The notes beneath the pieces are model-generated. The model made no database searches. It was not told where the DNA came from and saw only the letters and a list, made by a program, of their open reading frames with translations. This document shows, one piece after another, positions 3,481 to 45,527 of a stretch of 64,000 bases of DNA. Each line of letters opens with the position of its first letter. Position 1 is the stretch's first letter. The translations under genes and the position numbers were made by a program. This DNA is from Haliotis rubra (taxonomy: Eukaryota), in assembly GCF_003918875.1 (NCBI RefSeq), contig NW_025764929.1:186001-250000 (forward strand), given 5' to 3'.

Positions 3481-3486
3481 TACTGT

Positions 3487-6723: not shown

Positions 6724-7085
6724 GGGCTGGCTCAAATGATTGATAATCGGAAATATCGTTGATAGGAAAAAAACATTTAAAATTTTGTTATCGTTAATAT
6801 CGTACATTAACTTTTGTGAAAGAATAAAGGTTTGATTCATTTTCTCACACAATATGCGTTTTAGAACTTTATTCATGGTTGGCTTCTAAATTATGTTCAG
6901 GGCACTGTTTTGTTGATAATCCATGCAAAACATGGCACTACTCACCAGTGATGTGAAACATTTTCATTTCTTTCAGATATTTTTGGCATTTGTGCTCAAA
7001 GTTGCGTCAACGATATTTTTCGATAATCGATCGATATTTAGTATCGATTATCGATCTCTATGATCTATATCGATAGCCAGCCTTA
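6724..7085. mobile_element. Probable hAT-type MITE
   Basis: Termini gggctggct ... agccagcct with subterminal atcgat repeats. Related sequence at ~53560-53866. Confidence 0.45.
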
Positions 7086-7114
7086 GAGTTTTCATGATTC
7101 ATTTCACAACTTAC

Positions 7115-7713: not shown

Positions 7714-8116
7714 GCGTCTGTGATCACGAAGTAAAATGTTGACTTAGAATGTCTTTCTGTGATTTAAACTGGCATTTGATTCTTCGGGCAACGTAATATA
7801 TTATACGTACATTGAGATATCATATCACAAACGGGACGCCTGCTTTGTCACACACAAATATGGAAGTCGGAAAAAGCTTAATATAATAGTTCATACCTGT
7901 GTATGAACAAAAGATATGTGTATCTCCCCACGATCATGTGTTTGGCAATAAAAATGTAAATTTGAACTAAACTGAATACTTGAATCTAGTACATCTGTCA
8001 CATGAAGAACGAGTTCTAGGTGAAAGAAATGATCCGCGTTCAGTAAATTAAACATATTTGGGATCAGGTTACAGTGTGCGTAGATTGAGATTCCAGTGAT
8101 TTGTGCTTAAAAGCAC

Positions 8117-9236
8117 CTGAAAGGGTCTTAAGCCCATCCCCTGTGGTAAACTATGGTGGGTAACTGAAAGGGTCTTAAGCCCATCCCATGTTGTAAACTA
8201 TGGTGGGTAACTGAAAGGGTCTTAAGCCCATCCCCTGTGGTAAACTATGGTGGGTAACTGAAAGGGTCTTAAGCCCATCCCCTGTGGTAAACTATGGTGG
8301 GTAACTGAAAGGGTCTTAAGCCCATCCCATGTTGTAAAGTATGGTGGGTAACTGAAAGGGTCTTAAGCCCATCCCCTGTGGTAAACTATGGTGGGTAACT
8401 GAAAGGGTCTTAAGCCCATCCCATGTGGTAAAGTATGGTGGGTATGGTGGGTAACCATGAAAGGGTCTTAAGCCCATCCCTATGTGGTAAACTATGGTGG
8501 GTAACTGAAAGGGTCTTAAGCCCATCCCTGTGGTAAAGTATGGTGGGTAACTGAAAGGGTAAGCCCATCCATGTGGTAAACTATGGTGGGTAACTGAAAA
8601 AGCCCATATGTCTTAAGCCCATCCCATGTTGTAAAGTATGGTGGGTAACTGAAAGGGTCTTAAGCCCATTCCATGTTGTAAACTATGGTGGAAAGGGTAA
8701 TCTCATGTGGTAAAGTATGGTGGAAAGGGTCTGAAAGGGTCTTAAGCCCATCCCATGTGGTAAAGGGTCTTAAGCCCATATGGTGGGTAACTGAAAGGGT
8801 CTTAAGCCCATCCCATGTTGTAAAGTATGGTGGGTAACTGAAAGGGTCTTAAGCCCATCCCCTGTGGTAAACTATGGTGGGTAACTGAAAGGGTCTTAAG
8901 CCCATCTGTGGTAAAATGGGTGAAAGGGTCTTAAGCCCATCCCAGTATGGTGGGTAACTGAAAGGGTCTTAAGCCCATCCCATGTATGGTAAACTATGGT
9001 GGGTAACTGAAAAGGTCTTAAGCCCATCCCATGTTGTAAAGTATGGTGGGTAACTGAAAGGGTCTTAAGTGTGGTAAACTATGGTGGGTAACTGAAAGGG
9101 TCTTAAGCCCATCCCATGTGGTAAAGTATGGTGGGTAACTGAAAGGGTCTTAAGCCCATCCCATGTGGTAAACTATGGTGGGTAACTGAAAGGGTCTTAA
9201 GCCCATCCCATGTGGTAAAGTATGGTGGGTAACTGG
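8117..9236. repeat. 47-bp minisatellite
   Basis: Unit ctgaaagggtcttaagcccatcccctgtggtaaactatggtgggtaa, more than 20 copies, some degenerate. Confidence 0.95.
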
Positions 9237-9319
9237 TCAAGGTGCCAGAGGTTCGTGCAGGCAGATGAGCGCGTACCGTGTTATATCTTCATAAACATCA
9301 GGGACAACAGGGACAGGAA

Positions 9320-10445
9320 TGTGGGTATGTGGTGGTATGGGGACGTGGGTCTCTGGTGGTATGGGGATGTGTATCTTTGGTGCAATGTGGACGTGGGTAT
9401 GTGGTAGTATGAAAGACGTAGGTCTCTAGTGGTATGGGGATGTGGGTCTCTGGTGGTATGGGGACTTAGGTATGTGGTGGTATGAAAGACGTGGGTCTCT
9501 GGTGGTATGGGGATGTGGGCATCTGGTGGTATGGGGATGTGGGTCTCTGGTGGTATGGGGATGTGGGTCTCTGGTGGTATGGGGATGTGGGTCTCTGGTG
9601 GTATGGGGACGTGGGTCTGTGGTGGCATGGGGACGTGGGTATGTGGTGGTATGAAAGACGTGGGTCTCTAGTGGTATTGGGATGTGGGTCTCTGGTGGTA
9701 TGGGGACGTGGTTCTCTGGTGGTATGAAAGACGTGGGGATGTGGGCATCTGGTGGTATGGGGATGTGGGTCTCTGGTGGTGGTATGGGGATGTGGGTCTC
9801 TGGTGGTATGGGGATGTGGGTCTGTGGTGGTATGGGGATGTGGTATGGTGGATGGTCTGTGGTGGTATGAAAGACGTGGGTCTGTGGTGGTATGGAGATG
9901 TGGGTCTGTGGTGGTATGGAGATGTGGGTCTGTGGTGGTATGGAGACGTGGGTCTGTGGTGGTATGAAAGATGTGGGTCTGTGGTGGTATGGAGATGTGG
10001 GTCTGTGGTGGTATGGTGATGTGGGTCTGTGGTGGTATGGAGATGTGGGTCTGTGGTGGTATGGAGATGTGGGTCTGTGGTGGTATGGAAAGACGTGGGT
10101 CTGTGGTGGTATGAAGACGTGGGTCTGTGGTGGTATGGGGATGTTGGTCTGTGTGGTGGTATATGGAAAGACGTGGGTCTGTGGTGGTATGAAAGACGTG
10201 GGTCCGTGGTGGTATGGAGATGTGGGTCTGTGGTGGTATGGTGACGTGGGTCTGTGGTGGTATGGAGATGTGGGTCTGTGGTGGTATGGAGATGTGGGTC
10301 TGTGGTGGTATGGGGATGTGGGTCTGTGGTGGTATGGGAGATGTGGGTCTGTGGTGGTATGGAGATGTGGGTCTGTGGTGGTATGTGGATGTGGGTCTGG
10401 TGGTGGTATGGATGAAGACTTGGGTCTGTGGTGGTATGGATGGGA
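9320..10445. repeat. ~24-bp GT-rich minisatellite
   Basis: Unit gatgtgggtctgtggtggtatgg(a/g). Confidence 0.95.
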
Positions 10446-11721
10446 GAATCAGTAGGCTACTGACCACCAAGTAATTTTTTGACCTTTTCGATCTGTCCCA
10501 GTACGAAGTAATCACAGGTTACAGTGAACCAATATCACAGAGCTAGCGCCGTGATGTAGTGATATATATCACATACATGTAATCAACCCAGTGTCTCTGA
10601 GTTGTGTAGAACTCTGAAATCCGCAAAAATGTGGCATGAATTAACGCACTTTGACAAGAACCGATTGAAAGATGGCCAGCGAGACCGTTATTGTCGGTGA
10701 TTTATTCATAGGATGTAATATCAATATAGTACGTCAAATGGTATTTGTTTGGGATCGATAACCCGGACTGTTTATTCTTCTGGCTTCAAACATTTGCTCT
10801 ATTTTGTTGAAGTTCTTCCATTTGTTACCAAATATAATGGTTACCTGCAACTATCAGCACAATTCAACATATCGCCTACTTTAATATGAAACTTCACACG
10901 AGGAGAATTAATTATATTGGAAGCAGGTAGGACAAGGAAGTAAATCTGGGCGAATAACATTATGGCCAAGGCTAAACTGACCAATCCGCGGGTTCACATG
11001 ACCACAGTTTCATGTACTGTCCACCACCACGTGGTGGTGACTATGGCAACGTCATTTGCGTAATCGTTTTACGACCGCAACGTCAACTAATAACGTACTC
11101 TCCACTTCTTCGTACTCGACGTCCTAAGTTGGGTCAATTCTGGCACAGGTAAACCGTAATGAACGTGTACCTTGGTAAGTTTCCTGCAAAATGCGGATTT
11201 TGACGTCATGGAGTGGCCATCGAAATCACATGACCCCATACCCACGGATAGGATGCTCAAGGAAGAAGTCTTCGTGCATTAAGATGTCAACCCCAGAATG
11301 TTTAAGAGCTGGTTGCCATGTTGGTAGAACAATGCGCAGGTTGCTTTGTTCACGTATCAAGTCAGTCAATGAGAGACAACGTTCCCTTGCTGTTATGTGT
11401 GCGAAACGGGGGCTTACTTGGTAAAAGCTCCAATAAAGATGGCTAGACCCTGTGAAATCAACAAGTGACCCCAGCGTGCTACTGCGCACCTTAATGTTAA
11501 ACCATGATATAAAGTGTACGTTCATTACGTCCATTTCAACTATATAACCAGTATATTTGTCGTATTTTGCTACAGTTCTGTAATGTATTGTAATGTATCG
11601 CAGCTTATCCATATTTTATGTCAGTTATCGTAATAATTGTGTTATGATCGCGTAACATCCCTTGACTATAAAGTTAGTTATCTTCATCAGTCGAGGTGAA
11701 TACACAAAATGATAAAAGTGT

Positions 11722-11880
11722 ATGAGTGAGTTTGGCTCACAGCTATGCCGCGATGTGTCGGCTCGATGTGGAAGGATAACCCGAAGTCCCATTTCGGGAA
11801 AACACCACGAGTATTGTCCTGACAAATCTAGAAATATAATGGGGGCGAACTGAGATTAGAACCACGATCACTTGTGGCGT
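11722..11880 (-). mobile_element. tRNA-derived SINE-like repeat (family D), copy 1
   Basis: Near-identical to 12333-12515. Minus strand has a B-box-like ggtt(c)..atctcagttcgccccc and a (CACT)n tail. Confidence 0.55.
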
Positions 11881-11968
11881 GCCCAAGGACCACCAGCTCC
11901 ATTTAGCAAATTGCGGTGCCTTAATTGGACCTCCATGCCAATGACAATGGAATAACGTAATGCTAATA

Positions 11969-12331
11969 CCGTATTTCCTCTAATAAGCGCACCCGGCGCT
12001 TATTTTTTCAAAGGACCTCCAGACCCGGCGCTTATTAGAGGCCCGGCGCTTATTAAAATACCCTGTATTTTTAAAAGCGGGGGATGAGTACATGAAGTTA
12101 TGATTTAAGGACCATTCCTTAATATATTTATTTTTAGACCAAGGGAGAATACATTTGCGAAAATATGCAAAGGTCTATACCCGGCGCTTATTAGAGACCC
12201 GGCGCTTATTAGAGGCCCGGCGCTTATGTCTTAAAAAGCAGTGCTTTATCCCCGGCGGTTATTAGAGGCCCGGCGCGTTAATAGAGGCCCGACGCGTTAA
12301 TGGCGACCGGCGCTTTATAGAGGAAATACGG
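11969..12331. mobile_element. Tc1/mariner-pogo-type MITE with internal cccggcgcttattagagg repeats
   Basis: TIR ccgtatttcctcta / tagaggaaatacgg, TA on the left, repeated subterminal motif. Confidence 0.8.
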
Positions 12332-12332
12332 T

Positions 12333-12515
12333 GAGTGAGTGAGTTTGGCTAAACTTAGCTATCAGAGCAGTATTCCAGCTATGCCGCGGCGTGTCGGCTC
12401 GATGTCGAAGGATAACCCGAAGTCACATTTCGGTAAAACACCACGAGTATTGTCCTGACAAATCTAGAAATATAATGGGGGCGAACTGAGATTCGAACCA
12501 ACGTCACTTGTGGTG
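12333..12515 (-). mobile_element. tRNA-derived SINE-like repeat (family D), copy 2
   Basis: Direct repeat of 11722-11880, ggttcgaatctcag B-box on the minus strand. Confidence 0.55.
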
Positions 12516-12786
12516 GTCGCGTACCGATCCGTCGAATTTCTGATTTCTAAGTATTAAAATGCATTCGACGGATGAGCACTGTGATCTTAGCTATGAATTA
12601 GTTATCCAAACATTGGATCATACCAAGAAAAAGACGCAAGGAGTGTTGGATGGTTTGACTCTTTATTTTTTTTACTTTTGTACTTATCTTAGCCTACTCA
12701 TATGATACAATGAGAAATTGATGCAATAAATATATGTTTGGACTCTCTTTATTTTTGTACTTTTGTAGAAAATCGAAATTGATGCA

Positions 12787-13350
12787 TTAACCCTTGTCTT
12801 ATGGAGCTGGGTCCAAACGGGCCCCAAGGCTATAAATATCGTGAATATATAATATCTTTGACCAGCATTTAGAATTGCTCAGGGCAATCAGATTCATTAA
12901 CCTTTTTCGGGTCTTCTACCTTGTGTGACTAGAGCACATTTTAAATGGATTAACAAAACTTATTTGAACTTATGCAACGGGAGCTTGGTGGTTATCACTC
13001 TGATTGAAGTGATGGTGGATCTGATGAAGATTATCAACCATCTGAAGGATCTGAGAGCACAGAATCCGACTGTGACCCAGAGGATGACGCTACTTCCAAC
13101 TCTGACAATGAGACTGATGTACAAAGACAAGCTCCTGACAGGTATTACAGCCGTGATGGAGGACAGTGGTTCAAGGACCCAATGCCATTAGGTCGAACGC
13201 CTCAGAGAAATATATTATTCGCCAGCTGAATGGAAAAGTCACCAATCAAAATCCAAAATGTCTGTCCTGAAATTGTTGACGATATTGTCAAATGGACAAA
13301 TAAGTTTGCTGAAATTCAGTTTGGCACAGAGTGGAAGCGAAACTATTTAA
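12787..13350 (+). mobile_element. piggyBac 5' relic
   Basis: TTAA|CCCTT terminus, then a broken frame: acidic SDEDYQPSEGSES..., W..DP..GRTPQRNI, EIVDDIVKWTNKFAE (piggyBac transposase N-terminal pattern). Confidence 0.65.
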
Positions 13351-13692
13351 GAAAACTTGTAGTCTAATCCAATACAAGCCGACCCCTTAATTAATGAACT
13401 TAGGCTCTCCCAGTGTGTTAACACGGTCTGAAATTCGACCGATTATCACAGAACCACTCAAGCATGATTCGACAGATCGGCACTGCTGACTGTTCAAAAT
13501 TCGACGGATAAGGTAGTAACCCTTGTGGCGTGCCCAAGGACCGCAGCTCCATTTAGCACATTGCGGTGCCTTATTTCGAATAAAGCAGTGATAATGGCAA
13601 CTAGTTGTACTAATATACATAAGGAGTGGTTGAATCTTGTTTTACGTTGCAGTTTGCAATGTCACAAGAGATCGACACAAATCAAGCTTGGA

Positions 13693-13866
13693 GTGAGTGA
13701 GTGAGTGAGTGAGTTGGGTTTTACTCCGCTTTTAGGAATATCCCAGCAATATCACGGCGGGGGACACCAGAAATGGGCTTCACACTTTGTACCCATGTGG
13801 GGAATCGAACCCGGGTCTTCGGCGAGACGAGCGAACGCTTTAACCTCCATGCTACCCCACCGCCCC
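13693..13866 (-). mobile_element. SINE family A
   Basis: Full-length match to family A. Confidence 0.88.
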
Positions 13867-16800
13867 ATCTTCATACGAAATACACCAACCTCACAGGTTT
13901 TATACACTACGCCCCTTTATTACCTACGTGGTCAACGTATGGGTAGTTGCATACTAATCTCGTACGTCACACGAGTGTCGTATCGCGTTGGCCTGTGTCG
14001 TAACGACTTGACATGAGATTCTAACGGTTTGATTGGATAACCGATGACCTCCTGATATCGCCCGTGAAACCTTCGCTGCTTTGGTACGACTAGTGGCGCG
14101 TGGCTGTTTGGGGTGATTGTGGGGCGGTGGGGTAGCCTAGTGGTTCAACTTAAATCCAAACTCGGTCAGCTGTGACAATGTTTTTGAGACACCCTGACAT
14201 GACCATCGGAAATGACCTCCAGACTGGTAGTCAGCCTTTTGACCACAGCTTTAGGGGATTGACATATAGATCTTACCTAGTATGACGCCCACTGCAAGTA
14301 CTGCTCTCATTGTGCTGTAGTTGTAAATACTTTAAGTGTCTCTCAGCGAGCGTTATATATACACGAAAAATATTGACATGCGATATTCAATAATAATAAT
14401 TTAAAAAAATGAAATTTCGTGGAAAACCAGCAGCTGCCAATATGTTGAAGCTTACGGACACAGCGTGTAAGTTCCACGCTGTCGCAGACGCCGTGGCGTC
14501 ACATGTAACGCATTCACCACGTGTACGGAGAATATTGCTGGTAATTACCCGAGCTCAACGGGTTTATAACATTAAATCACGACGGCCGGAATCAATGGTG
14601 AAATTCTTTCCACATTGCCAACTTTTTCATAAGATGAAGAGTGGTAGGTCTGTGGTTCAGTCCCTGACAGCATCATTCCAAAGTATGTTAAACGATGGTA
14701 CTTGTTGTCGCCCTGCCTGACGCTCGGTGTTTCGAGACTCAGTTTACTGTGTCTGACTGGGGCATCTATGTTAAGCTTCAGCATGCGACATCAGGAAATA
14801 CGGAATTTACAAAGGGTCTTACAGTCCCGTACCCTTTCAAAACACCGTGTAACTAATACTATTACAATATTACTTCACCCGCACTGGTTTATTGCTGTTT
14901 ACATCATGTTAGCGTCATTCAATTCTTACTCCGACGTAAGATCAGACTGACGTCACATCTGACGTCATTCCGAAGATTGCGGGCACCATTCAACAATTCT
15001 ACCGGTAACACGCCGTTCGTGTCCACTGCATGTTTTTGAAACGGATATAAAAATAGTTTAGAAATAAGGGGCAACAAAGAAAATATTACACTGCATAATA
15101 AATAATATGAAAATCAGTAATGTGTTATACTGTTTCAGGAGAATTCACGTATTACTGTTGCTTTCGCGCGGGAAGTACGATAACACTGACTCTCGTTTTG
15201 TAAAATCAATATGACCCATAAATCAGTATAAACTGTTGATTATCACAATTATTGCGATGCTATTGAATATCACGTCAACAATGCTATAATGCATTACGTC
15301 ACAAGTGTCAGTCAGTCTTATGCATATACTTCGGACGGCTTTCAATATGCATGATAAATCGTAAAAATGCATATGGTTACGTCCCTCCTGGGACTCCATA
15401 ATAAAACGATTAAGTTAAACATTTTATCTGGTTTACGGGAAGTGTGGGTCTCACCGCCAAAACGGCGTGGTCCCTATAGTTTTGTCTTCCGTTTTCGCGG
15501 CCATCTTGGATATCAACACGGCGAAATGTCTTCGAGGGGTGCAGCTATTGGCTCTTTTCTCACATATAGATGACACTTCGAGATACAAATATTTCTGGAG
15601 ATAATGTTAATATGATATATGTCTCTTTCAGATTCGATAATTTACAGGATGCAGTGTGTGTGCGTGGGGTGGTAATTGGGGATTTTAAGGGGGGTCACCG
15701 ATTTTGGTCGGGGGAGAAGAGTCGTCATCAATTTTGTGCACATGTACTAGGGGTTCATCAATTACGTACTTAAGAGAATGTAAAAAAAATGCTTAACAAT
15801 TATGGGAATGGGATGGGGTGGGGTCATTGATTTTGCACATGACAGGCGCGGGTGGGGTGGGGGTGGGGGTGGTGTGTGTGTGTGTGTGTCCCTGTACATA
15901 CATTTAAGAGGGGGTCATTGACATGCTTCTCGATAAAAATCGTGAACAACACTTAGACACACCCCATCCCCCACCCCACACACACGCTCAATAAATTATA
16001 AACGCTCCCTAAATATCAAAATAGGCTAAAGAACCCTGGCCCACAGTCACTGCATCCCAGACAGATGTAGGTAGTGTTAAAATTCTTGAGTTAGCTGAAA
16101 GGTGTTTCACGAGTCCATTGTTATTGTCCTATTATTGTTCAGTTTGGAAGTAACTATTTTATGTTACCCCATCTTATCATATATCGATAAGTTGGAAACA
16201 TGGCTTGAAATCAGTTTGTGATTTCATATACTAAACATACCTACGAGTAGATGACAAGCTGTAAAAATACAGGGTTCATCGAGAAGTGGTGCTAGATTAT
16301 CATACGCTACCCATCACTAAATTATATTATGACCGTTCTGTAAATTATAACTTTCTATTCGCATTTACGAAATTTATATATCTATAGTGAAATATTTATA
16401 AATGGATATGATATGTTTCCGCGTTTAAAATCAAGCTCTATTCGTATATATGTTCTTCTGGGAAATGTTGAGGACAAAACATAGATGAAAATCGTTTTGT
16501 AGGGTGGGCCCATGCTCAATTGTACATAAATAAATATAGCCAAGATAGGGGATATTCCGTAATTCTCTGTACGTGACCACAAAGGGGTAAGGGGTATTGG
16601 CCATTTTGCATCAATAGTTGTAAGGCATCGCAGAACAATCGGCAGATTTCGGGCTTGGTCGTTATATCCGAGAACAATAACGTCGCATCTGTTGTTCCCA
16701 CCAAGTTCAGTGTGTGACCCGATCTGCACCGTTTACCTCCCGATTAAGCCCGAGATGTTCTCACTGTACGTGCCGATTGGAATTTCAGGCGTAGGGTTAC

Positions 16801-17365
16801 CCGAGCTGAGGTCAGGGTGGCCTTATAAGGAGCACAGAATCAAAGGGATTTTTTAGCGGAAAACTGTAGGTCAAATAAATACATTTCATCGGGCTTGTTA
16901 TTTATATTATCAAAGAAATCCAATCTTGATCGGCTTTAAGTTCAACAAATAGGAAACATGTTTTGTTCATGAAGAAATTATTTACATTGAAAATGACACA
17001 TTGAAATGTTGCTAAGTCTTCTTGGAAACTCGTTTTAAAAAATAAGATTAATTCAGTGCATGATCTCTTTGTTGTCGAGAAGATAGCATTCTTCTTTGTG
17101 AGATTTCAATGCTTCATAAACTGACTGGTATTTGCAGGTTTATGAGTGAGTAAGTTTAGTTAAACGCCGTTATGAACAGTTTTTCAGTCATATCACAGCG
17201 ATTCAGCTTTGTTTTAGAGTATAAAGATACCGGATTCGAACTTACGATCATTGATTGCAAACATACCAAAGGGATGCAACTCTGCAAAGCGGCGCTTTAG
17301 ACCATTGGGCCTTTTTGACTGTGAGGAAATTCTTATACTAAATATACGATCGTTACAAAATACTG

Positions 17366-17717: not shown

Positions 17718-17844
17718 ACAAAATACTATTGGTATAGGCAGACAATTGTCTACCATGAAAATATATAACAAGTGAAATACACATAACACACAAACACAAA
17801 ACAACAAAAAGAAGAAAGCCGTTGTCATCTATGCAGGTTATCGT

Positions 17845-17985
17845 AAGTGAGTATGGTTTTACGCCGCTTTTAGCAATATTCCAGCAATATCAAGGCATAG
17901 GGATACCAGAAATGGGCTTCACACACTGTACCCGTGTGGGGAATCGAACACGGGTCTTCGGCGCGACTAGGCTACCCTACCGCCC
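17845..17985 (-). mobile_element. SINE family A (internally deleted)
   Basis: Match to family A. Confidence 0.8.
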
Positions 17986-18659: not shown

Positions 18660-19125
18660 GTATCACAACCATTGGCTGGTCCGTCACAACCATTGGCGGG
18701 TACATCACAACCCTTGGCGGGTACATCACTACCCTTGGCGGGTACATCACTACCCTTGGCGGGTACATCACAACCATTGGCTTGGTACATCACTACCCTT
18801 GACGGGTACATCACAACCATTGGCGGGTACTATCACATCACCCTTGGCGGTACATCACATCACTCACCCTTACATCACAACCATTGGCTGGTACATCACT
18901 ACCCTTGGCGGGTACATCACTACCATTGGCTGGTACATCACTACCCTTGGCGGGTACATCACAACCATTGGCTGGGTACATCACTACCCTTGGGTGGTAC
19001 ATCACAACCATTGGCTGGTACATCACTACCCTTGGCAGGTACATCACTACCCTTGGCAGGTACATCACTACCCCTTGGCGGGTACATCACAACATCACTA
19101 CCCTTGGCGGGTACATCACAACTCT
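18660..19125. repeat. ~21-bp minisatellite
   Basis: Unit ggcgggtacatcactaccctt. Confidence 0.93.
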
Positions 19126-19164
19126 TGATTGGCACAACAGATGCTGCTATATTTTAGTTATATC

Positions 19165-22061: not shown

Positions 22062-22344
22062 CTGGGGTGAAAAAAGGCAGTTGTCAGGGTAACAGATATA
22101 TATAAAAAAAAGAAAAAAAGAAAGATATAAAATAAGTGAATATGCTTAGAAGTCTGGAACAAATATAAACAAAATTTAGAGGCAGTTTTTGAAAAGGTGT
22201 TAATGGAGTGCTTGTGATCCAAGTCTGACTCCAAGACCATGGAGGTGAAGGTCAGGGTGTCCTCTGAGGAATGACTTCAGACCTTGCTTCACATATAAAA
22301 GTGTAGTGTAAAACAAGGCTGCCATAACATTACCTCATATGCGT

Positions 22345-22500
22345 GAGTGAGTGAGTTTAGTTTTATGCCACTGTTAGCAATGTTCCAGCAATATCATGGC
22401 GGGACATCAGAAATGGGCTTCACACATTGTACCCATGTGGGGAATCGAACCCGGGTGTTCAGCGAAATGAGCGAATGCTTTAACCACTAGGCTACCCCAC
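22345..22500 (-). mobile_element. SINE family A
   Basis: Match to family A. Confidence 0.85.
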
Positions 22501-23961: not shown

Positions 23962-24142
23962 GGCAGTATCTGGATTTGGGGACAGAACCAGGGTCCTTGT
24001 TCTTCAATAATACATTTATAAAGATGAGAACTTTGTGTTTACATCACCAGTGTCCCTGCTTGTCACCTGTAACAGAAACAAGAGTCTGTGAGTGATGGAG
24101 TGATTGAATGTGTGAGTTAGGCTTATTGCCTCTTAGAACAGT

Positions 24143-24187
24143 GGGGCAGTGGGGTAGCCTAGTGGTTAAAGCAATCGCTCGTTACAC
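24143..24187 (+). mobile_element. SINE family A 5' head (A-box), split by the P element; continues 32323-32376
   Basis: ggggcagtggggtagcctagtggttaaagcaatcgctcgttacac | element | gttacaccaaagacccgggttcgattcc. Confidence 0.9.
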
Positions 24188-24250
24188 CAGGGAGACTCTA
24201 TAAGAGGGAGTGGTCACTCCTCGAAAAGCCCCGGAGCTGTGCCTCGGCTC

Positions 24251-24377
24251 GTCACGTGACCAGTGTAGCCAATATGGCGGCAGCTTAGTATATAAGATTG
24301 AGCCTGGTCTATTTTCAACAGCTGAATACATTCGCCGAGTGTTGTGACAACTGATAACCCACACGTAGAAGGTAAGT
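24251..24377 (+). promoter_or_regulatory. Putative internal promoter and 5'UTR exon of the transposase gene
   Basis: Palindromic E-box gtcacgtgac 24251-24260, CCAAT, YY1-like aatatggcggc, consensus donor GAAG|gtaagt at 24371/24372. The first coding ATG (27541) directly follows an acceptor, so an upstream exon is implied. Confidence 0.5.
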
Positions 24378-24564
24378 CACCTATTCTGTCACTTCATTTT
24401 AAGTCAAATAATTGTTATTAGTGTCAGTATTAGTACAATAGATTTGTAGTAAAGTTTCAAGTCGGAGTGTTGTAGCTCACTGGCTTCCATTCTCGGTACA
24501 CAGCGGAGAAAGACTAAATTATGTCGCTAAAAAGTTCTTTCACACAATCGATTAATTTTTAGAA

Positions 24565-25335
24565 GGGAAATATACCTTTAGTTGAAAGTTGTATGCAAGT
24601 AATAGTGATAGTTTTATCATTTAAAAAAATTTGTTAAGGTATATTTGAGGTGTGTGAAAAATGTGAAATATCGCCGATGTGTGCTGACCCGCCATTGAAA
24701 TACTACAGGGCGATGTTTGAGTGCTTCTAGTTATTGTTCTAAAGACTTCTTTCACATGCACCTTTAATATTTATGAGGGGAATATACCATCAGATGAAAG
24801 GTGTTTGCAGGTAATAGTGATAGTTTTAAAACTTTAAAAAAATTGTGAGGGTGTATTTGAGGTGTGTGAAAAATGTGAAATTTCGCCGATCTGTTCTGAC
24901 CCGCCATTGAAATACTACAGGGCGATGTTTGAGTGCTTCTAGTTATTGTTCTAAAGACTTCTTTCACATGCACCTTTAATTTTTATGAGGGGAATATACC
25001 ATCAGATGAAAGTTGTATGCAAGTAATAGTGATAGTTTCATTATTTAAAAAAAATTGTTAGGGTGTAGTTGAGGTGTGTGAAAAATGTGAAATATCGCCG
25101 ATGTGTTCTGACCCGCCATTGAAATACTACAGGGCGATGTTTGAGTGCTTCTAGTTATGGTTCTAAAGACTTCTTTCACATGCACCTTTAATATTTATGA
25201 GGGGAATATACCATCAGATGAAAGGTGTTTGCAGGTAATAGTGATAGTTTTATAACTTTAAAAAAATTGTTAGGGTGTAGTTGAGGTGTGTGAAAAATGT
25301 GACATATAGTGGATCTGTTTTGACCAGCCATGGAT
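24565..25335. repeat. 212-bp tandem repeat (~3.6 units, ABAB) inside the P element
   Basis: gaggtgtgtgaaaa at 24647, 24859, 25071, 25283. Confidence 0.93.
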
Positions 25336-26221
25336 GCCTTTGATGCTTGAGTGTTGTAGTTCTAAAACATGTTTCTTTCTTGTTTATCTTAGTATATGAA
25401 AACTGGAAAGGTCTTTACAACGCTTTGTGATAAAGTGTTAAAATTTCTGTATTTGAGGGGTGTGTGACAGTGTCAGTTAACATTCTGTCAATATCCATGC
25501 CATTCCACACATGCAGGAAGATATCTGGATATTCTTTCATTCATTCACATGTAATGTCTTCCTATAATTCATTCATTCATTCACACATTGTTAAATTGGG
25601 AAGATAATTTAGAAATTGAGAGAAAAGGGCATGGGGCACTCATAAGCATAACAAACAGAAAGGCAGAAACATAATGAGACATTTTAATTTGTAACATATC
25701 ATTTCAAGCATATATCAAAATAGCTGAATAGTCCCATACTTCTGTATGGCTCTGAGGTTTGGGGACTACAAACATTTGATACACTAGAAAAAGTACATTT
25801 ATATGCAATAAAAAAGATTCCTTGGTGTGAAAGTTACCACTGGATATATTGGAATAAAAAAAAGACGATAGAATATGTGAAATGTGTGACTTGAATCTAA
25901 TTGAAGATGATTATGATTTTCGTGTTTGTCCAGCCTACCACAATTTAAGAAATAAGTATATTAAGAACTATTACTTTGTACATCACTATTTATAAATTTA
26001 TATCTCTATTAACCTACCCTAGCAAGGAACACCTGGAAAAGTTGTCGATGTTCCTATACCATGCCTTTCTTCACAGGAGAAATGTACTCTCTACTGCCTA
26101 ATAACAATATAGTCAGTATACATGTACTACAGGCCTGTGGCCTCTTAAGTGCAAAATAAAGACTTGATGATCAAGCTGAATAGTCACATAAACAGAAAGT
26201 CACTGAACAAAGCAGTGTCTT

Positions 26222-27261
26222 TTAGTCCTTGATGGAACCACGAAGAGATCTAGACTTCTTCCTTGGCGCTCTCTTAGCTTTCAAAGCCCTGCTTGCCTCT
26301 CGCTCCAGTTTTCTTGCCATTGCATGTGACCTTACTTTAAGAAACCTTTGGACGATCTCTTCCAACAGTTGACTACTGTTGTGCGAGTCTCCGACAAGAG
26401 AGTTCCAATACTTAATCACCAAAACATTGGTTAGAATGGCCTCTCTTAAGGACTGGTTGCCCATTTTGCCAGTTTTAAGCACGGGTACAGCCTTCCTTGC
26501 TTCTGTCTCAAATAGTCTGACAATGAGAAAGAAGGAGTCACAGGGTTGCTGGAGACCACCTCTGTCAATTTTATGTGACCACTTCCTTACATCGATGAGA
26601 AAGTTTTCCTTCTTTGAATCTGATGTCTCCACTAACTTGCTTATTGCTGACAACTTCTCCTTGTCCTGTTTAGCACTTTTCTTGGCAGAATAGATAAAAA
26701 ATCCTGCAATCAGATGCAGCACACTCTGATCTTGTTGGCTCAGTTCAGAATTCTGCTTTTCTTGGTCTTCCTCACATTTCTCTAACAGCAGCCTTATCGT
26801 AGCACTGACAACACCATCAATGAAACTTGTAATGAAAACAGGAACAAAACTCTCACTATTTCCAAGATCACTGCTGTCACAAATATCCCCTTCAACAGAA
26901 TCTAGTACATCAAAGTTCATTTTCAGTTTGTGTAATTGTTTGAAAAAAGCCTCACGCTCAGAACTGTTGAATCCGGATTTGCCAAAGTCCCTGAATATTT
27001 CTTTAAGATGGGTCGACAGTGGCTCTGTGAGTACCCCACTTGATTGACCACTAATTTTTTTTGCAAGGAAAACAATATGATATCCATGGGCTGATTCTTG
27101 CATCGTGTGGTATAGGCTGTTTTCCATCTCGGTAAGGGTGACCGAAGTAGCTTCTCTAAGAACTTGTTCGAGATCATCTGGCAACCAACTTGTTTGCTGC
27201 TTTGTTGTGTCTTCTTTCAGCACGACACCATGGTCTACTGTCAGCTGTAGATGATCTGCTG
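26222..27261 (-). CDS. P-element accessory gene B, exon 2 (domain resembling the P-transposase C-terminal region)
   Basis: Acceptor ttttgtttttacag|C at 27262/27261, phase 1, in frame with exon 31679-31934. Motifs LSQQDQSVLHLIAGF, KWSHKIDRGGLQQP, FLKVR and a basic tail. Confidence 0.8.
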
Positions 27262-27540
27262 CTGTAAAAACAAAATTATGTACATTATTAAATCATCATC
27301 AGTATCAGTATCAGCAGCAGCAGCAGCAGCAGCAGCAGGGCACTGAATGAATTAAAAAAGCAATATGAATTCAGACTCGACATTCAACAATAAACTGAAC
27401 TGTTTATACACTTGTACCTACTGTCGAATGTTTATTATGTTTATTATGTTGTCAATATTCTGTTTGTTATTGCATGAAAGATGTTAAGTCCATTAACATT
27501 ACAAAACATGAAAAATATATCAGTCTGTTTCTGCTTACAG

Positions 27541-27665
27541 ATGCCACGGAAAGTCAGAAAGAAGATTGGTCGAAAACCAAAGAGAGACATAAATAAGACG
27601 CTGATAGCTCCTTGGGAAACTCATAATAAATACAACTACTGTCCACATCAAAGTTTTGATCCAGG
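27541..27665 (+). CDS. P-element transposase, first coding exon (basic, NLS-like MPRKVRKKIGRKPKR)
   Basis: ttacag|ATG ... CCAGG|gtaagt, phase 2. Splices in frame to 28324 (cttgcag|G) and ORF 28364. Confidence 0.75.
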
Positions 27666-28323
27666 GTAAGTATTTTGGCTTTGATTTACGGGAGAAGGCA
27701 CAGCAACTGCCATTTTGAAAATGTTTGGACATTGTTTGGTCATCTGTAGGTCATATCACAAACTACGGCACATTGCCACACTAGCTCATGCACAAAATGG
27801 ATAAAGCAAAAACATCCGAAGTAGGAATTACTGCAGGTGTAGTTTATTTACTGAAGCACTTCACTGCTAACATATGAAGAAACTGTCCATTTTTAAGTAA
27901 AGATGATTTGTAAAAGTGTTTAAGTGTCATTGCAAATGTCATCAGTGCTGCTGTTTCGGGGTTTCTAGATTGTGCTGCCAAGTTTAAGATGTCCTAGTTT
28001 GTGCATTATTTAATCGTTGAATAAATTAATTCACACTTTTTGATTAACGATTATACAATAAGAAGTATGTACATATTTTCAGAATAAATTAAATGGGAGC
28101 TGTCCTAAATGCTGATAAGATTCTATTATTGCGAGAAATGAATTATTAATTTTTGGGGTATGCCGATGTGCCTTTACTCCACACCAAATTAATACCTTGT
28201 TTTCAAGAATTTTTTAGGTTCGGAGGGAAGTAAATAAGTCATACTGATTAACTAAAATAATGATAAAACCGATTCAATAGTCACTCATAACTATGTTACT
28301 GAAATTAAACTGGTTTCTTGCAG

Positions 28324-30939
28324 GTCCAGAGATTATCATGATCATCAGGACTGGTCGACAGCAATGCTGAGATTCTTCAATACACACAGCCAATCTCAAG
28401 ATGAACAAGAGTCAGAGCTGACAGATTCAGATGGAGCTACTGCCAATGAGTTCTATGTCATACTAGAGAGGCCATATATGTATCATCCCGATGAAGATGT
28501 AGACAGGTTTGTCACAAGACTTTCTCAAGAGCGGCCCCAACAAAAGTTTGCGGCTTTAAGGAAGAGTGTAAATGACAGTTCCAGAATCTTTCAGAACTAT
28601 TCAATCATCAACACACAAGGGTCTATGAAACTACTTCAACTTTATCCATCAGAGATACCTGCAGTGAAATGGACTGTGTCTGTTAATTCAAACTGTGTTA
28701 TGTCTATTTCTGTGCATCGTAAGATCATACCATCTGACCAAGATTTCTGGCTAGGAATCCCTAACATTGCTCATGGAGCAGCTGACATTAAGAAAGTGAC
28801 AGATAAACTTGAAAGTTTCAATGTTTGTTGTGGTAACTGGGAAAATAAGTATGTTGACCTTATTCCACCTGGGGCAGTGATTACCAGTAGCAAGTTCACA
28901 ACCTCTGCATTCAGAGAAGATAACTGTGGTTCAACTCATTATTCAGCAACAATTCGAAGCACAAAATGTTCCTTTCTCGTCAGAAACTCAGAACGATGCC
29001 AACCGTGTGTTGTATACAGAGGATCTCTATGCAAGAAGATATATCGAAATGAACATTCACCCCCAAGTTGTCCGGAGGATGCTGTGAAGTGGAATCGTCC
29101 CCATGAAACAATGTCAAGGACTCAGTTAGTGGAAAAAATAGGACATTTGAAGAGTACCAATGAAGCTTTGGTGAAGGACAATACCAAACTGAGAAGGCAA
29201 ATCCAAAAACAGATTGCTGCAAATGGTCAAATATTCAGTGAATCAACCAGTAATGAACTTGTACAACTAGTTGAAAGCCACACAAAAGAAGTTCACCAGA
29301 ATTACCCTGATGAAAACACTCTCCATCGCCTGTTTTGGGATGAACAGCTGAAATACAATCAACTTAGGGATAAGAGGGGCATGAGATGGCATCCCATGAT
29401 TGTAAAATGGAGCCTGTATTTACAACATAAGAGTCGGAAGACGTATGAAGCCTTGAGAGATTCTGGATTTATAACCCTTCCGTCAAATAGAACTCTCTTT
29501 GATTACTCTCATGTGCTACCAAATCAACTTGGCCTCAATCCTGAAGTGACAAGACATCTCATCTCCGAAATTGCTGGTTACAACATAAAGTGTAATGAAC
29601 ATACAGCATTTGTTGGTCTATTACAAGATGAGATCAAGGTCAAAGAAGGTCTTGTTTATGACAGTGCTTCAGATGAACTTATTGGCTACACCGACTTTGA
29701 CAAAACATCAAATAGCCTAATTGACTTGGAAAATGTCTTCACAAATGAAACAAGAAAACTTGCAACCTCTATGCTTGTGGTAATGGTGCGTGGAATTACA
29801 ACAAGTTTGAAATATCCATTCGCAGCTTTTGCAACCCTTGGTGTGACAGCAGATTTACTGTACAATATTATCTGGAACTGTGTGAAAACTTTGGAAATTG
29901 ATTGTGGACTTAAAGTACTGTTTGTAACATCTGATGGTGCCTCTCCTAATCGGAAATTCTTTGGCATGCACAAAGAAGAAAATTGCAATTAACTACCAAC
30001 TTACTTCACATGGAATACATATGCAACTCCTAGGCGTGAATTATTTTTTATATCTGATGTTCCACATTTAATGAAAACTACACGCAACTGCTTTGCAAAT
30101 TCAAGTAGCCACAAACTATCCAGAAAATTGTGGAAGGATGGAAAGAACATTTCATGGATGCATATAGTGAACCTATTTGAAGACTACTGTGAAACCAATT
30201 TGTACAGGCTTGTGCCCAAAACTGACCAGAGCTCATGTGGACTTAACAGCATTCTCACAGATGAAAGTAAACTTGGCGCATTGGTGGTTTTGAGTAAAAC
30301 TGTTCGCGGATGCTTTGGAAGAATTATATGGCGATCAAGTGATAGAAACGGTGAAATTCATAAGTCATATGAATAAGTTCTTTGACTGCTTGAATGTCAG
30401 AAGTCTATCTGAAGGCAGAAAAACAAGAAATAGGGATCGTGATATATATTGTGAAGGAGATGATGACCGCCTCACTTATCTTATGAATGACTTTCTTGGG
30501 TACTTTGATTCATGGAGAGTAAGTGTGACCAATCGTCCTGGAGACTTTACAAAGGGACAAAGATCATCTATGATGCTTAGTCATCAAACTTTAGAGGGAC
30601 TCCAAATATCAGTACGATCTATAGTGGAATGTGTGAGGTTCATGCTCAACGAAGGGGCAGATTTTGTACTGACACATAGGTTTAACCAAGATCCCCTGGA
30701 AGAACATTTCACAAGCACTATAGACAAAAGGGTGGATCAAATGAAAATCCCTCGGTGTATCAAGTGCTAATACTTTGTGCACTATGAGAACTGTGGGATC
30801 TCAAGCTATTGCAACGGTTCGGGGCAATATTACCAATAAACGCCGCTCTGCTGGGACAGTAAACCAACAACCATTGCCCAAAAAAAGAGGAATGTATAAG
30901 TGTAACCTGAACTCAGTCAATATGACTCAGACAAAGTGA
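28324..30939 (+). CDS. THAP9/P-type DDE transposase, main exon (in-frame TAA at 29990 plus several indels 30220-30770)
   Basis: RWHPMIVKW..YEALR..ITLPSNRTL, LLQDEIKVKEGL (D1), VTSDGASPNR (D2), SDVPHLMKTTRN, QMKVNLA, RFNQDPLEEHF (E), GGSNENP, VRGNI..PLPKKR. Confidence 0.9.
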
Positions 30940-31678
30940 CTTTGAAACAATGCCCAATGTGACTTGGAAAACTATACGCAGTGTTTAGAACAAAATGTCA
31001 GACCATAGGACTTATTACTTTGAAAAATCTACAAGTCCTTTAGGAAACCTTCTTGCTTGATTTTTAAATAGAAAACTAAGAATTCATAATAGATTTTTCT
31101 GCATTTAAGTTATAGTTACTCACACATTGTCTAGTTGCCTTCCAAAAACTATCCAATTCTGAGTACATCCTGGCTATAAGTATGTCAGATTGTCTGAATA
31201 AAATCAGAAACAATTATACGTTGCCATGTCATTTGGTGTTATCTATTACCTATTAGATTGTATTGTACACAGGTCACCTGCAGTGAAATCCTACTTGTAC
31301 TCATGGTTACCAAGAATACCTATGTAATTATCATTTTTTATATTTTTTTTATCCAGATACCTACATATTGTACATATTTCTGTACATATCTCCACTTAGA
31401 AAACCAACTTGCTGTCTGTTTAATCCTATAAGACATTTTCTTCAGACCAAAATAATGTAAAGTATTCACAAAGGACAGTTGTTTACATTTTGTAGTCCAT
31501 GTTTGTAATATCAAATAATCATATGTATGTTTATGAAGACAAGATTATTACTAGAGGTCTTATCTATATTCTCACATGACTCATATTGTTTTCATTTCCT
31601 AAAATAAAAGGATTCAGGTTATTTTCCTTTCATGTTTCGTCTTGTTGTGTCTGTTTTTTAAATTGTAAGTAAATTTAC

Positions 31679-31934
31679 CTTTCAGATCCTTTCTGTTATG
31701 CTTCTTCAGAACATGACTTCTGAAACCTGACTGAGACTTGTAGGTCTTGACACATAGAGGGCACTTGAACAATGGGCCGGTCTGCTCACTGTCACAGGTA
31801 TGCTTTCTCTTAGCCGCGACTTCCACGTCTTCAACACCCTCGTCTTCTGATGAACTGTGGTCGCTCCTGAAATCGCCCAAAAAGTCTGCTAACTCCAAAT
31901 CTTCCCAATCGATAAAATCACTGTTCTTCGCCAT
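31679..31934 (-). CDS. P-element accessory gene B, exon 1 (acidic N-terminus plus C2H2 zinc finger)
   Basis: ATG 31934, FKCPLCVKTYKSQSGFRSHVLKKH, donor AAAG|gtaaat at 31679/31678 (256 nt, phase 1). 256+1040 = 1296 nt = 431 aa + stop. Confidence 0.8.
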
Positions 31935-33781
31935 AACGTTACGTTACGTTCATATGAATGTTTCTTAAATATATAGCAAAACATGAATGAACTTACCTTC
32001 TCAACTCATGCTAACTGCGTAAAAACATCCTCAAATCCTCCTGTAATCCACACATCTATCAGGCGGCGACAGGAAGTGTAACCAGGTTGTTGTGACAACA
32101 TTCAAGGGGGCCTACTCCAATTTACCGAGCATTATTCCGGCAGTTGCCGATAGTTTCCGACTGATACAATAAACTGGCTGAAGTACTGTTAAACGCAGCC
32201 GAAGTTGCGCTGGGAACGAACCAAGTCACTGTGTGCGTTGGAGCATGACGAGGCACACGTTAATTAGTACAAATGGTAAAGAAAGCAAGCGAGTGACCTA
32301 TCCCTGTTGTAGAGTATCCCTGGTTACACCAAAGACCCGGGTTCGATTCCCCATATGGGTACAATGTGTGAAGCCATCATCTGACAAAAAAAACAACTAA
32401 AATAATAATAATAATCAAAACCGTAATTTTAGGATTCTGGCACTTGTAAGGAATGTGACCCAGTGAGTAAATCACAAAGAAACTACCCCATGAAATGGAG
32501 GACATGAAATTGAATGAGGCATAATTATTACCTTGGACAATAGATCCGAAGGTTTTATATTCATATCTTCCTTGGGACAATACAACCAAAACTGCCTGTG
32601 AGGCTTTAGAAGGCTATCTCATGCTCATGTGTACCCATGCATTCCTTGTTGATAAGAGGCAAACATTAAAGTCACTTTGCACAAGTAGACACCATATGTG
32701 TTAAAAGTCCTTCAGTGTTGGACAGGACTGAAGTCCCATAAACACTCAAGAGCCATAATGCTCATGTCACCCACACCGTTAGCCATCCAAGGACTCTCTG
32801 TCACTCTGCTTCCAGTGTTGCTTAACTGCACCTGATTTGTCACCTGATTTCGCTTAACTCAGGACCATATACTACAACCTTTCTGATGCTGTATTTTGTT
32901 TTGTTTAACACATCATGATGTTACTCATGAGACAGAAATAGCACATAAAACTGGCGGCACTGATCCACCCTCATTAGTTATGTTGACACAATGATCTGTC
33001 AGAGGCATTAAATTGAAATGAAAACTGTTGAAAATAAATTTGTAACATACAACAGAGGCAGCAAATGTCTGATGTAATATTGAAATGCTGAATATCATCT
33101 GTGGAATTTAGATTTTACTGCCCTTCCCTAAACATGGGAAAAACAGTTTTGTCATACTCATAGGTTTTTTTTTTTAAAAGTTTCAGGATGGGACCGTTTA
33201 TACAAGGCTGGTTTTAACAATGTAAGAGTGACAAGATGATTTGAAACCTATAGTAAACAATTTACATTGTTCTGTATAGCTGTCATGGTCAGCAGATTTG
33301 GAAGGATATATCATATGGAAATGAAAGTTGGAGATGATTACCCATGACTGTTGGCTGAATAACCTGGTACAAGCAGACGAATCCATGTCAAATGTATTTC
33401 ACCGGAATAAATTGTGCATCGTCCTCCTAATATCAAGCTGTATCATAGACGTAAGCATATTGTTGACTGCAAGTGTGTCTGGGCGAAAATGTCTTTCGCC
33501 AATCTTCTCAGAATCCAACTTGCCCGGAATGTCTGTCTAGTAAGCCAACAAGAGTTCTTCCCCTTGAATTCTAAATGTTCAACGCAAGGAAACGAATGTT
33601 ACCTATACATTGAATGTCAAAACCTAGGGAATTGCTTAATATATTCAAGCAAACTTACAAATATGTTCATCAACTTGTTTGTATTGTAACTATATGTTAC
33701 AACAAAGCCAATGCCATATGCATTAACACATCATAAATCCGTATTTCAGTCAATGCGTTGTTTTTTATATAACCTTCAAAG

Positions 33782-36975: not shown

Positions 36976-37983
36976 AGGGACATAACTGTGGGTGATTTAC
37001 AGTGTCCTAGAATGATTGCTGATGACAGATATCACGTAACCATGGTAACAAGTACAGTGAGACTTTCTGAACATGTTGTTACTAAAAATATGTAGATGTT
37101 TGGAGACCATCTTGAAAATATGACAGCAGATCCTAGTGAAAGAAAAGGTCAAAGTTTCTTTCTTTATGAAGTGATACCATCAAAGTGATGGAATAAGAAT
37201 CGTGGTTTGCCTAAAGGATGTCTGACATAAAAATTCAAACCTCAATGCTTTTGACATCCAGCAAGTTTCTGATAAGACCAACAAGGTCTACTCTACAATA
37301 CAAAGCAACATTTTGTACCGTTGGTCTACTTATGTACAGTATGCCTTGAATGTCCGAATAATTCCTGCATCCATCGGTTGAATATGAGATGTGGTATTTG
37401 GTCACATTTCGCAAAGTTAGCGAAGCACACTTGTGACTTGCAACGTTGTTATGGTTCGTGAACATGACTTACAGCATCCGGACTGTGAAGCAGTTTACTG
37501 TTTATTTTACTGATTGGTTACAGCTACTTACCGTCCGGTTCCGGAAACCGAATTTCTGGATTATCGAGGCAAATTAAATAGGCATAGATTGGTAACAAGC
37601 TAAAATCGTCCGGGAGCAGGAGTCGGGACATCCGGATTATCGGAGTCCAGACTAACGGGGCTTCACTGTATTATGTAGTTATGCCTACTTATCGATATGT
37701 AATATCTGCAAAGAAAGAATGGTCAATGTAACACCGACTAAGGCCCTATGCCAAACCTGTAAATACTATCTATTTATGTATGCCTTGTATATGTGAACAT
37801 CTGTTCATAATTATAATGTCATGTAAACATGTACTGGGAAATAAAAACGTTAAAATAAAAAGAAAAAAAGATCTACTCTTTCGATATTATGTGAATCAAG
37901 ATCTGTCAGCACAGTTGAAGCGGTAATGATGATTTGTCTGGAGAAGCATGTACAGTGTGACTGACCCCTTCTAAAATTTATGT

Positions 37984-38148
37984 GGGTGGTGGGGTAGCCT
38001 AATGGTTAAAGCGTTGACTCGTCACGCCGAAGACCCGGGTTCGAATCCCCACATGGGTACAATGTGTGAAGCCCATTTCTGGTGTCCCCCGTCGTGATGT
38101 TGCTGGAATATTGCTAAAAGCGGCGTAAAACCAAACCCAGTCAGTCAG
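37984..38148 (+). mobile_element. SINE family A
   Basis: Full length, TSD ~tctaaaatttatgt. Confidence 0.9.
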
Positions 38149-41305: not shown

Positions 41306-42233
41306 TCCAGTCTCTCCTGTCTGTTATTAGACCTGAAAGGAGTGCACAGCATGTTAGGGCAATACAAACCTAAAACAAGCTCAAATGATTTTTAATCAGT
41401 TTAATAGTAGATCTAATAATGGTCACAGCAGTTAATAAGGGATATTGTATGCAATACATGTTGGAACATTCATGCCAACACATTTACTCAATTATTTTAA
41501 AGTCTTGACTCTCAGGCCCTGGACCATGTTATTGACTCCTCCACCTTGTAACTTCCGCATTGCATAAACCCTAGATGAAGCAATTCCACGCATTATTTTG
41601 GTTCAGGTTCTGAATCTCCCGCTCTCTACCTCTTTTAAATAAAATAGGCATTTGCTTCTATCAGATACTACGCGTCTGTCTAATTATTCAGTTACAGGCG
41701 TGAATTATTAATGCTAAATCGACTTGGCATGTGGGCTATATATAGATCAAAACAAACGACCTCCAAAGAAAGTATTTCCAGTGATAGTGATAATTGATGA
41801 CGTGGATGTCTCAATTAGCGCGACACGCCAAAATGGTGGTAACTTTTTATCCCGTACCGGTGATTATGTAATACTGTGTACCTCGCCGACCAAGGCGAAG
41901 TGCAGGCGGGGGTCCCAGCAATTTGAGCATGTGTGTCATCTACCCTGCTATTTAGATAGACATTTTGGGACAAATAGTGCTTCGTTATCCTACTTTAAAT
42001 TCAGCTTGGAAGCAACGAAAGGAGGTACTCTCGAATTACAGGTTCTTGAAGAACCGGGCAAGAAGACATTTGGTGGTCTTCAGTCTGATGAGTGTGTTAC
42101 AGGTAAGATATATATTGGGAATCGCTACAAATGCATTGATACAGTATTTATGACCGGCAGTAACGTGGGGTGCTTTTCGGTGTTGTGATTCCTGTCAGCG
42201 TTATGCTGAGGTGAATTCCAACGGGGATTTCTG

Positions 42234-42391
42234 GGGCCTTGGGGTAGTCTAGTGGTTAAAGCGTTCGCTCGTCACGCCCAAGTGTTCGATTCCCTACATG
42301 GGTACAATGTGTGACGCCCATTTCCGGTGTCCCCGCCGTGATATTGCTGGAATATTGCTAAAGGCGGCGTAAAACTAAACTCACTCACTCA
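42234..42391 (+). mobile_element. SINE family A
   Basis: Match to family A. Confidence 0.85.
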
Positions 42392-45363: not shown

Positions 45364-45527
45364 GGGGAGGTGATGTAGCCTGGTTGTTAAGTGTTCGCTG
45401 GTCACGTTGAAGACCTGAGTTCGATTCCCCACATGAGTACAATGTGTAAAGCCCATTTCTGGTGTCCCCCGCCATGATATTGCTGGAATATTGCTATTTA
45501 AGCGGCGTAAAACTATACTCACTCACT
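45364..45527 (+). mobile_element. SINE family A
   Basis: TSD tgtaacgctacg. Confidence 0.88.

Follow-up and report, generated by a model that had tools for sequence, protein, structure and literature searches.

A P-superfamily transposon of Haliotis rubra that pairs a short transposase with a second gene predicted to encode a homologue of the P transposase C-terminal domain

We analysed a 64,000-nucleotide stretch of the Haliotis rubra genome (RefSeq contig NW_025764929.1, positions 186,001 to 250,000; hereafter the window) and found that its positions 24188-32322 form a single P-superfamily transposon of 8135 bp with two genes inside it. One is a transposase gene on the plus strand. The other, on the minus strand, is gene B, annotated in RefSeq as LOC124273115; its 4.4-kb intron contains the whole of the transposase gene, in antisense. 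Gene B encodes a C2H2 finger and an all-helical region that resembles the C-terminal domain (CTD) of the Drosophila P transposase, a domain that is absent from the transposase beside it. The features of the element and its insertion site are as follows, TIR standing for terminal inverted repeat, TSD for target-site duplication and SINE for short interspersed nuclear element.

24142-24187, plus strand: left half of a SINE, closing with the 7-nt left TSD copy (GTTACAC, 24181-24187)
24188-24219, plus strand: left TIR, 32 bp, begins CAGGGA; 27/32 positions match the reverse complement of 32291-32322
24552-25331, no strand assigned: subterminal tandem array, a 212-bp unit x 3.7 with 91% matches; near the left end, internal
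27261-26222, minus strand: gene B exon 2, an all-helical region with the CTD homologue and a basic tail; stop codon at 26222-26224
27541-27665, plus strand: first coding exon of the transposase, MPRKVRKK..., a basic N-terminus as in the scallop and brittle-star proteins; donor CCAGG/GTAAGT
28324-30939, plus strand: main exon of the transposase, with a Cys-rich N-terminal module, the RNase H N-part, GBD, the RNase H C-part and a basic tail
31934-31679, minus strand: coding part of gene B exon 1, an acidic N-terminus and one C2H2 finger
32291-32322, minus strand: right TIR, pairing with the left TIR
32323-32384, plus strand: right half of the SINE, opening with the 7-nt right TSD copy (GTTACAC, 32323-32329)

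One element around both genes

Generic inverted-repeat scans missed the TIRs, which emerged after the flanks had been recognised as halves of a SINE. Given that the flanks are the two halves of one tRNA-derived SINE split by the insertion, the element must end at 24188 and 32322. We rebuilt the empty site against intact SINE copies at 22407-22500, 37975-38090 and 54290-54390; the joined flanks make an intact SINE with one GTTACAC. TSDs in the P superfamily are 7-8 bp long. The window element, with its 32-bp TIRs (27/32) and 7-bp TSD, has the ends expected of the superfamily, as does an element of Haliotis cracherodii described below; the TSD is 7 bp in both of these delimited copies. In the Drosophila P element it is 8 bp (PMC7776569).

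A second H. rubra copy lies on another scaffold (locus L002). It is collinear with window positions 24569-32198 at 91-95% identity and holds the transposase and the two exons of gene B, which is decayed; it also has additional insertions. Its 212-bp array has 1.5 units only; this array may consist of putative subterminal transposase-binding repeats, or may be a plain satellite expansion.

Within the transposase gene, a 542-aa open reading frame (ORF) at 28364-29992 matches the Pfam model TNP-like RNaseH_N (PF21787) with an E of 3e-22; after it come three shorter ORFs, in other frames, that Pfam matches weakly to the GBD. The catalytic-E motif, FNQDPLEEHF, lies at about 30681-30710, and coding ends at 30939. 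Splicing of the first coding exon, 27541-27665, to the main exon, 28324-30939, is predicted from the sequence. The protein thus assembled has the DDE RNase H-like domain interrupted by a GBD that is typical of the P superfamily, and does not have the superfamily's CTD within the transposase polypeptide. The window copy is a pseudogene, with a stop codon at 29990-29992 and frameshifts near 30211-30219, 30713 and 30767. A phmmer search of PDB sequences with the transposase ORF returned nothing relevant. The segment 24230-24378, immediately within the left TIR, has boxes resembling CCAAT and TATA motifs (AGCCAATATGG, TATATAAG) and, after them, a splice donor of consensus type, GAAG/GTAAGT, at about 24378; the transposase gene might begin here with a noncoding exon that is spliced over gene B exon 2.

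Gene B and the C-terminal domain of P transposase

Gene B is read from two minus-strand ORFs. The first, 31614-31934 (106 aa), contains one C2H2 finger, matched by zf-C2H2 (E 6e-4) and zf-C2H2_4 (E 2e-4), both under the gathering cut-off of Pfam. The second, 26222-27223 (333 aa, and open to the acceptor at 27261), contains LSQQDQSVLHLIAGFFIYSAKK, KWSHKIDRGGLQQPCDSFF and FLKVR, followed by a basic tail. Joining 31679 to 27261 (donor AAAG/GTAAAT, acceptor tttttacag/CA) is in frame and yields a protein of 431 aa. An alternative donor at 31727 yields exactly the 415-aa isoform X2 of LOC124273115 in RefSeq, which is without the two His residues of the finger. The intron also carries a perfect (CAG)9 microsatellite at 27312-27338, about 50 bp upstream of the exon 2 acceptor.

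A confident AlphaFold2 model of gene B built from 150 sequences (pLDDT 82.7, pTM 0.75) is all-helical over residues 100-400 and ends in a long basic helix (365-399), after which comes a tail rich in Lys and Arg. We compared this model with 48,161 PDB representatives using VIA-align, an aligner that does not depend on Foldseek. The top match was 6p5a_B, the CTD of Drosophila P transposase, where gene B residues 239-395 superpose on residues 617-734 (116/118 residues, rmsd 2.3 A) with a Z of 11.1, a value that by the tool's own note is within the reach of chance for helical models; the runner-up had a Z of 7.4. Since this Z alone could be due to chance, the case rests on its agreement with an independent sequence match to the same chain. 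Indeed, a profile made from 50 gene B family members, searched against 177,635 PDB sequences, matches 6p5a_B with an E of 0.007, and HMMER aligns the chain in two collinear stretches, YIAGYVIKKL and VSHGGLIKPSEKF.

Further signs of the same relationship come from domain models. Pfam Tnp_P_element_C (PF12596) matches 5/50 members when they are searched singly, the best with an E of 2.3e-4, and C2H2 models match 10/50; three members (P0084, P0086 and P0099) carry a precomputed THAP9_C (PF22824) label. Among AlphaFold DB clusters, the gene B model also matches proteins named P transposase and THAP9. Taking profile and model together, we conclude that gene B residues ~239-395 are homologous to the P transposase CTD, with the same predicted fold. 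Other searches were negative: phmmer with gene B against PDB sequences found nothing relevant, and look-alikes in the ESM Atlas had scores <0.8 only and belonged to unrelated bacterial and viral clusters.

The first-pass annotation of this DNA, made from the sequence alone, had proposed that the domain missing from the transposase had moved to a second polypeptide with a finger. All the sequence features that it quoted are in place, and the Drosophila CTD motifs that it named are real, being the two stretches of 6p5a_B that align to the family motifs. The resemblance of gene B to the P CTD on which the proposal depended is there both by profile and by structure.

Gene B belongs to a sizeable family, with 267 cluster representatives found by HMMER at E<=1e-3. 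All 150 among the matches listed are stand-alone proteins, of 120-480 aa, often present as several near-identical copies in one genome. Named members come from the molluscs Haliotis, Patella, Batillaria, Mytilus, Pecten and Mya, the annelid Owenia and the hemichordate Ptychodera, and their consensus includes LS..DQ.VL.YI.GYI, W..K.DRGGL..P.D.FF and LFLT.RG. A word-index search with gene B found only gene B itself, and almost nothing more when repeated with the 150-sequence profile.

Four AlphaFold DB proteins of 820-1081 aa (A0A6J8CNV3, A0A6J8ABC3, A0A6S7K6B8 and A0A8B6CHX7) are annotated 'ATP-dependent DNA helicase'; Foldseek aligns part of each with the greater part of the gene B model, with E from 2.6e-5 to 4e-3. 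These are either fusions of the domain to a helicase or merged gene models of neighbouring transposon genes.

A transposase lineage with a short C-terminus, and its partner gene

A search with the transposase found 82 relatives, mostly from molluscs, with others from a brittle star, a hemichordate and a cnidarian. The intact relatives are single ORFs or RefSeq models of 830-930 aa that match PF21787, PF21788 and PF21789 only; PF12596 is in none of them. They end about 75 residues past the catalytic E, 40-50 past the Pfam RNaseH_C match, in the same basic tail, and the C-terminus of the window copy aligns with theirs. When the gene B family was compared with the transposase family by hhalign, the probability was 0.75%, with no CTD-like region in the transposase. 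Across the whole window, the sole match to the hidden Markov model (HMM) of the gene B family is gene B, and there is no plus-strand CTD. The uniformly short C-terminus, the null result from hhalign and the single HMM match argue that the short end is a trait of the family and that no exon is hidden. Among 150 tblastn queries, one family member, P0142, gave a weak match to the C-terminus of the brittle-star transposase, which we attribute to chance in view of that number.

These results largely support the first-pass proposal. Its observation that the plus-strand transposase ends about 75 aa past the catalytic E with no further coding holds in the window, and no downstream plus-strand exon restores the domain. 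Homology, architecture, the shared TIR/TSD and the conserved pair of genes speak for a domain on a second polypeptide with a finger; what has to be revised is its tie to this locus, since the C-terminus is short throughout the family. Likewise, its reading of a P-type transposase with a short C-terminus stands, but for a copy that is a pseudogene.

We also modelled the transposase of the scallop, which is intact (pLDDT 75); the model matches 6pe2_A and 6p5a_A with an E of 5.6e-21 and a TM, by target, of 0.74-0.75. Chain A of the P transpososome holds the HTH and RNase H domains along with the GBD. As gene B matches chain B and the relative of its transposase matches chain A, the two genes together reconstitute the resolved P transposase.

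The N-terminal part of the lineage is of another kind. Neither THAP nor PF12017 was matched at E<=0.01 in six intact relatives and the window ORF. In the model of one relative (P0023), residues 140-300, corresponding to 28364-29250 in the window, form a confident beta-rich module that is not THAP and has four nearly invariant Cys, C236, C288, C297 and C300; the ~140 residues before it are disordered. To judge by the model, this Cys-rich module is probably a different, putative zinc-binding DNA-binding domain.

The two genes are linked in molluscs, a hemichordate and metagenome contigs, with both of them intact in the scallop and in H. cracherodii. Positions below are those of each locus.

Ylistrum balloti, scallop (L005): transposase at 3175-5979, plus strand, an intact 934-aa ORF; gene B exon 2 at 6965-8059 and finger exon at 10131-10469, minus strand, intact, with the same DLK/G splice point; convergent
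Mytilus coruscus, mussel (L003): transposase at 10001-14772, plus strand; gene B at 15478-16601 and 18882-19157, minus strand; convergent
Haliotis cracherodii (L007, a different family): intact 909-aa transposase at 12935-15976, minus strand, and intact 480-aa gene B paralogue at 10001-12256, plus strand; convergent, 680 bp apart; an element at 9715-17033 encloses the pair, with TIRs that begin CACGGA and a 7-bp TSD, ATACCAA
Ptychodera flava, acorn worm (L006): transposase and gene B both present, convergent, 8.5 kb apart
ENA contig: 973-aa transposase and P0086, convergent
ENA contig of 61,880 bp: transposase P0012; P0130 matches a 366-aa minus-strand gene 3.4 kb downstream; convergent

Homologues of exon 1, the finger exon, are present at L001, L002, L003, L005 and L007. 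The convergent layout is the usual one; in H. rubra exon 2 lies beyond the transposase instead, which appears to be a derived state.

In the brittle star Amphiura filiformis (L004), an intact ORF for a CTD-less transposase (P0017; 9962-12670, 902 aa, 889 aa as annotated) lies in an intron of an ion-channel gene. On the minus strand at 13751-13855 there is a weak match of ~35 aa to the N-terminus of gene B, resembling a remnant of exon 1. Gene B may be supplied to this copy from elsewhere, or the copy may be on its way to domestication.

The SINE that received the element recurs in the window in both orientations, at 2684-2746, 6341-6459, 13692-13819, 17843-17958, 22339-22500, 37975-38147, 42232-42391, 45410-45527, 54286-54450, 57653-57749 and 63847-63909. 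It is tRNA-derived, with the head GGGGTAGCCTAGTGGTTAAAGC... and box B GGTTCGATTCCC, and the same SINE has also inserted into the second copy of the element, at L002 11098-11171. Elsewhere in the window, positions 8001-12000 have a strong skew of G over C (0.42 and 0.21 in 2-kb windows) and a GC content of 0.45-0.49, above that of the surroundings.

Roles for gene B and their place among two-gene transposons

In the cryo-EM structure of the Drosophila P transpososome, as reviewed in PMC7776569, the CTD consists wholly of helices, and a disordered linker tethers it to the RNase H domain. It lies against the other subunit, touches both the transposon and the target DNA, and finishes in a helix and a tail that are both basic. 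The CTD already acts across subunits on a floppy tether, so its supply as a separate protein is plausible. On balance we favour the reading that the window holds a decayed but complete two-gene P-superfamily transposon in which gene B would provide the CTD in trans, within a heteromeric transpososome. The gene B protein would bind the transposase and fill the place of the tethered CTD in the strand-transfer complex, flanked by the RNase H domain of one subunit and by the other subunit's GBD. Its CTD-like part would contact transposon and target DNA through the basic C-terminal helix, and the C2H2 finger may add recognition of the DNA ends or of the target. The active transpososome would then be a heteromer, and transposition would be predicted to require gene B.

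Several results weigh against this reading. The window copy is incapable of activity. Gene B alone has no CTD match in Pfam, Foldseek comparison of its model with PDB and Swiss-Prot models gave nothing meaningful, and the caution attached to the structural Z applies here too. The pairing itself is uneven: the genes are 8.5 kb apart in Ptychodera, the Amphiura locus has no gene B within 10 kb of P0017, and one of two places that bear P0086 has no transposase within 10 kb. Finally, the divergence of the transposase and that of gene B were not correlated over five paired loci, a comparison that says little because the aligned regions were unequal.

Other roles for gene B have to be set against these points. 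It could be a regulator or repressor encoded by the element, binding the ends or the transposase and damping or timing transposition while not being an essential subunit. We think this unlikely, if worth keeping in mind: P elements do encode truncated repressor proteins (PMC7776569), a loose comparison, and gene B has a predicted DNA-binding finger of its own, half of which is removed by the alternative splice form, a hint of regulation; the intact Amphiura transposase with no gene B beside it would suit this role as well. Yet the repressors known from P elements are fragments of the N-terminus rather than of the C-terminus. The CTD is absent from the whole transposase lineage and contacts DNA in the solved complex, which means that some protein must supply those contacts, and the retention of an intact gene B within the TIRs in phyla far apart is easier to explain by a required function than by a brake. 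Still less probable, in our judgement, is an accessory factor for targeting or chromatin tethering, with the CTD-like fold serving only as a handle, for the transposase or for something else, and not replacing the function of the CTD. Such a role would account for the ~240 residues of gene B with no counterpart in the Drosophila CTD (acidic N-terminus, finger and the helical half at 100-238, about 140 aa) and for a similar fold in the proteins annotated as helicases. However, the match spans the whole of the resolved CTD, with the terminal basic helix and tail kept, and the transposase has nothing else in the role of the CTD.

That an ordinary one-gene P element happened to insert into an intron of an unrelated host gene would be a very improbable coincidence. 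The arrangement invites the idea, the transposase lying entirely within the gene B intron and gene B being annotated as an ordinary gene, but TIRs and TSD enclose both genes and the second copy, on another scaffold, carries both as well, which excludes a P element that merely landed there. Moreover, the pair recurs at six or more other loci and species in a convergent layout instead, and gene B is homologous to exactly the domain that the transposase is without. We rejected nested insertion in a host gene on the TIR/TSD around both genes, on L002 and on L007.

As a broader and more tentative proposal, one that we hold with less assurance than the reading of the window element, there may be an ancient P lineage of molluscs, annelids and hemichordates with an obligate two-protein transposase whose CTD is supplied in trans by a C2H2-finger protein. 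The split and fused forms could be related by a single fission or fusion, possibly because an ancestral element had its 3' end inverted.

The element has much in common with Drosophila P and THAP9, namely TIRs of ~31-32 bp, a TSD of 7-8 bp and, within the system, a helical CTD with YI.GY and GGL..P motifs and a basic end. Unlike them, it has the CTD on a separate polypeptide from the opposite strand, which also comprises a C2H2 finger and a further helical region, and its transposase has a different Cys-rich N-terminal module in place of THAP or PF12017. The gene B family is likewise related to Tnp_P_element_C (PF12596) and THAP9_C (PF22824), weakly by sequence and clearly by fold; as named, those families are the C-termini of full-length transposases, whereas here we have stand-alone proteins of ~300-480 aa.

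Other DNA transposons also encode two proteins, among them Kolobok (Kol0 with KolX), CACTA and MuDR. The PIF/Harbinger elements resemble the present one in having two proteins per element, the second with a DNA-binding domain; PMC2836001 describes both the transposase and the Myb-like ORF1 protein as needed for transposition. Gene B has no homology to any of these accessory proteins; it is a domain split off from the transposase of its own superfamily. KolX was considered as a relative of gene B and rejected, its fold being a Cys-rich cytoplasmic-ballast fold and not helical. Full-text literature searches, which did not cover Repbase Reports, returned no description of two-gene P elements.

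P elements are a textbook transposon, and THAP9 is their human relative. The role of the CTD is poorly understood, and the C-terminal end of THAP9 is called uncharacterised in the literature on that protein; the split lineage bears on this question. The domain as a separate gene shows that the CTD is separable from the catalytic core, in agreement with the flexible linker and the cross-subunit position seen by cryo-EM. With this element, the P superfamily joins the DNA transposons that encode two proteins, the role of gene B in transposition being predicted. Hundreds of mollusc, annelid and hemichordate proteins listed as 'uncharacterized' or 'C2H2-type domain-containing' are, on this evidence, transposon genes. 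Intact natural pairs are at hand in Haliotis cracherodii and the scallop. If the proposal is true, the lineage would offer a natural system for dissecting the function of the CTD, and would be a source of the many stand-alone 'C2H2-type domain-containing' genes of marine invertebrates.

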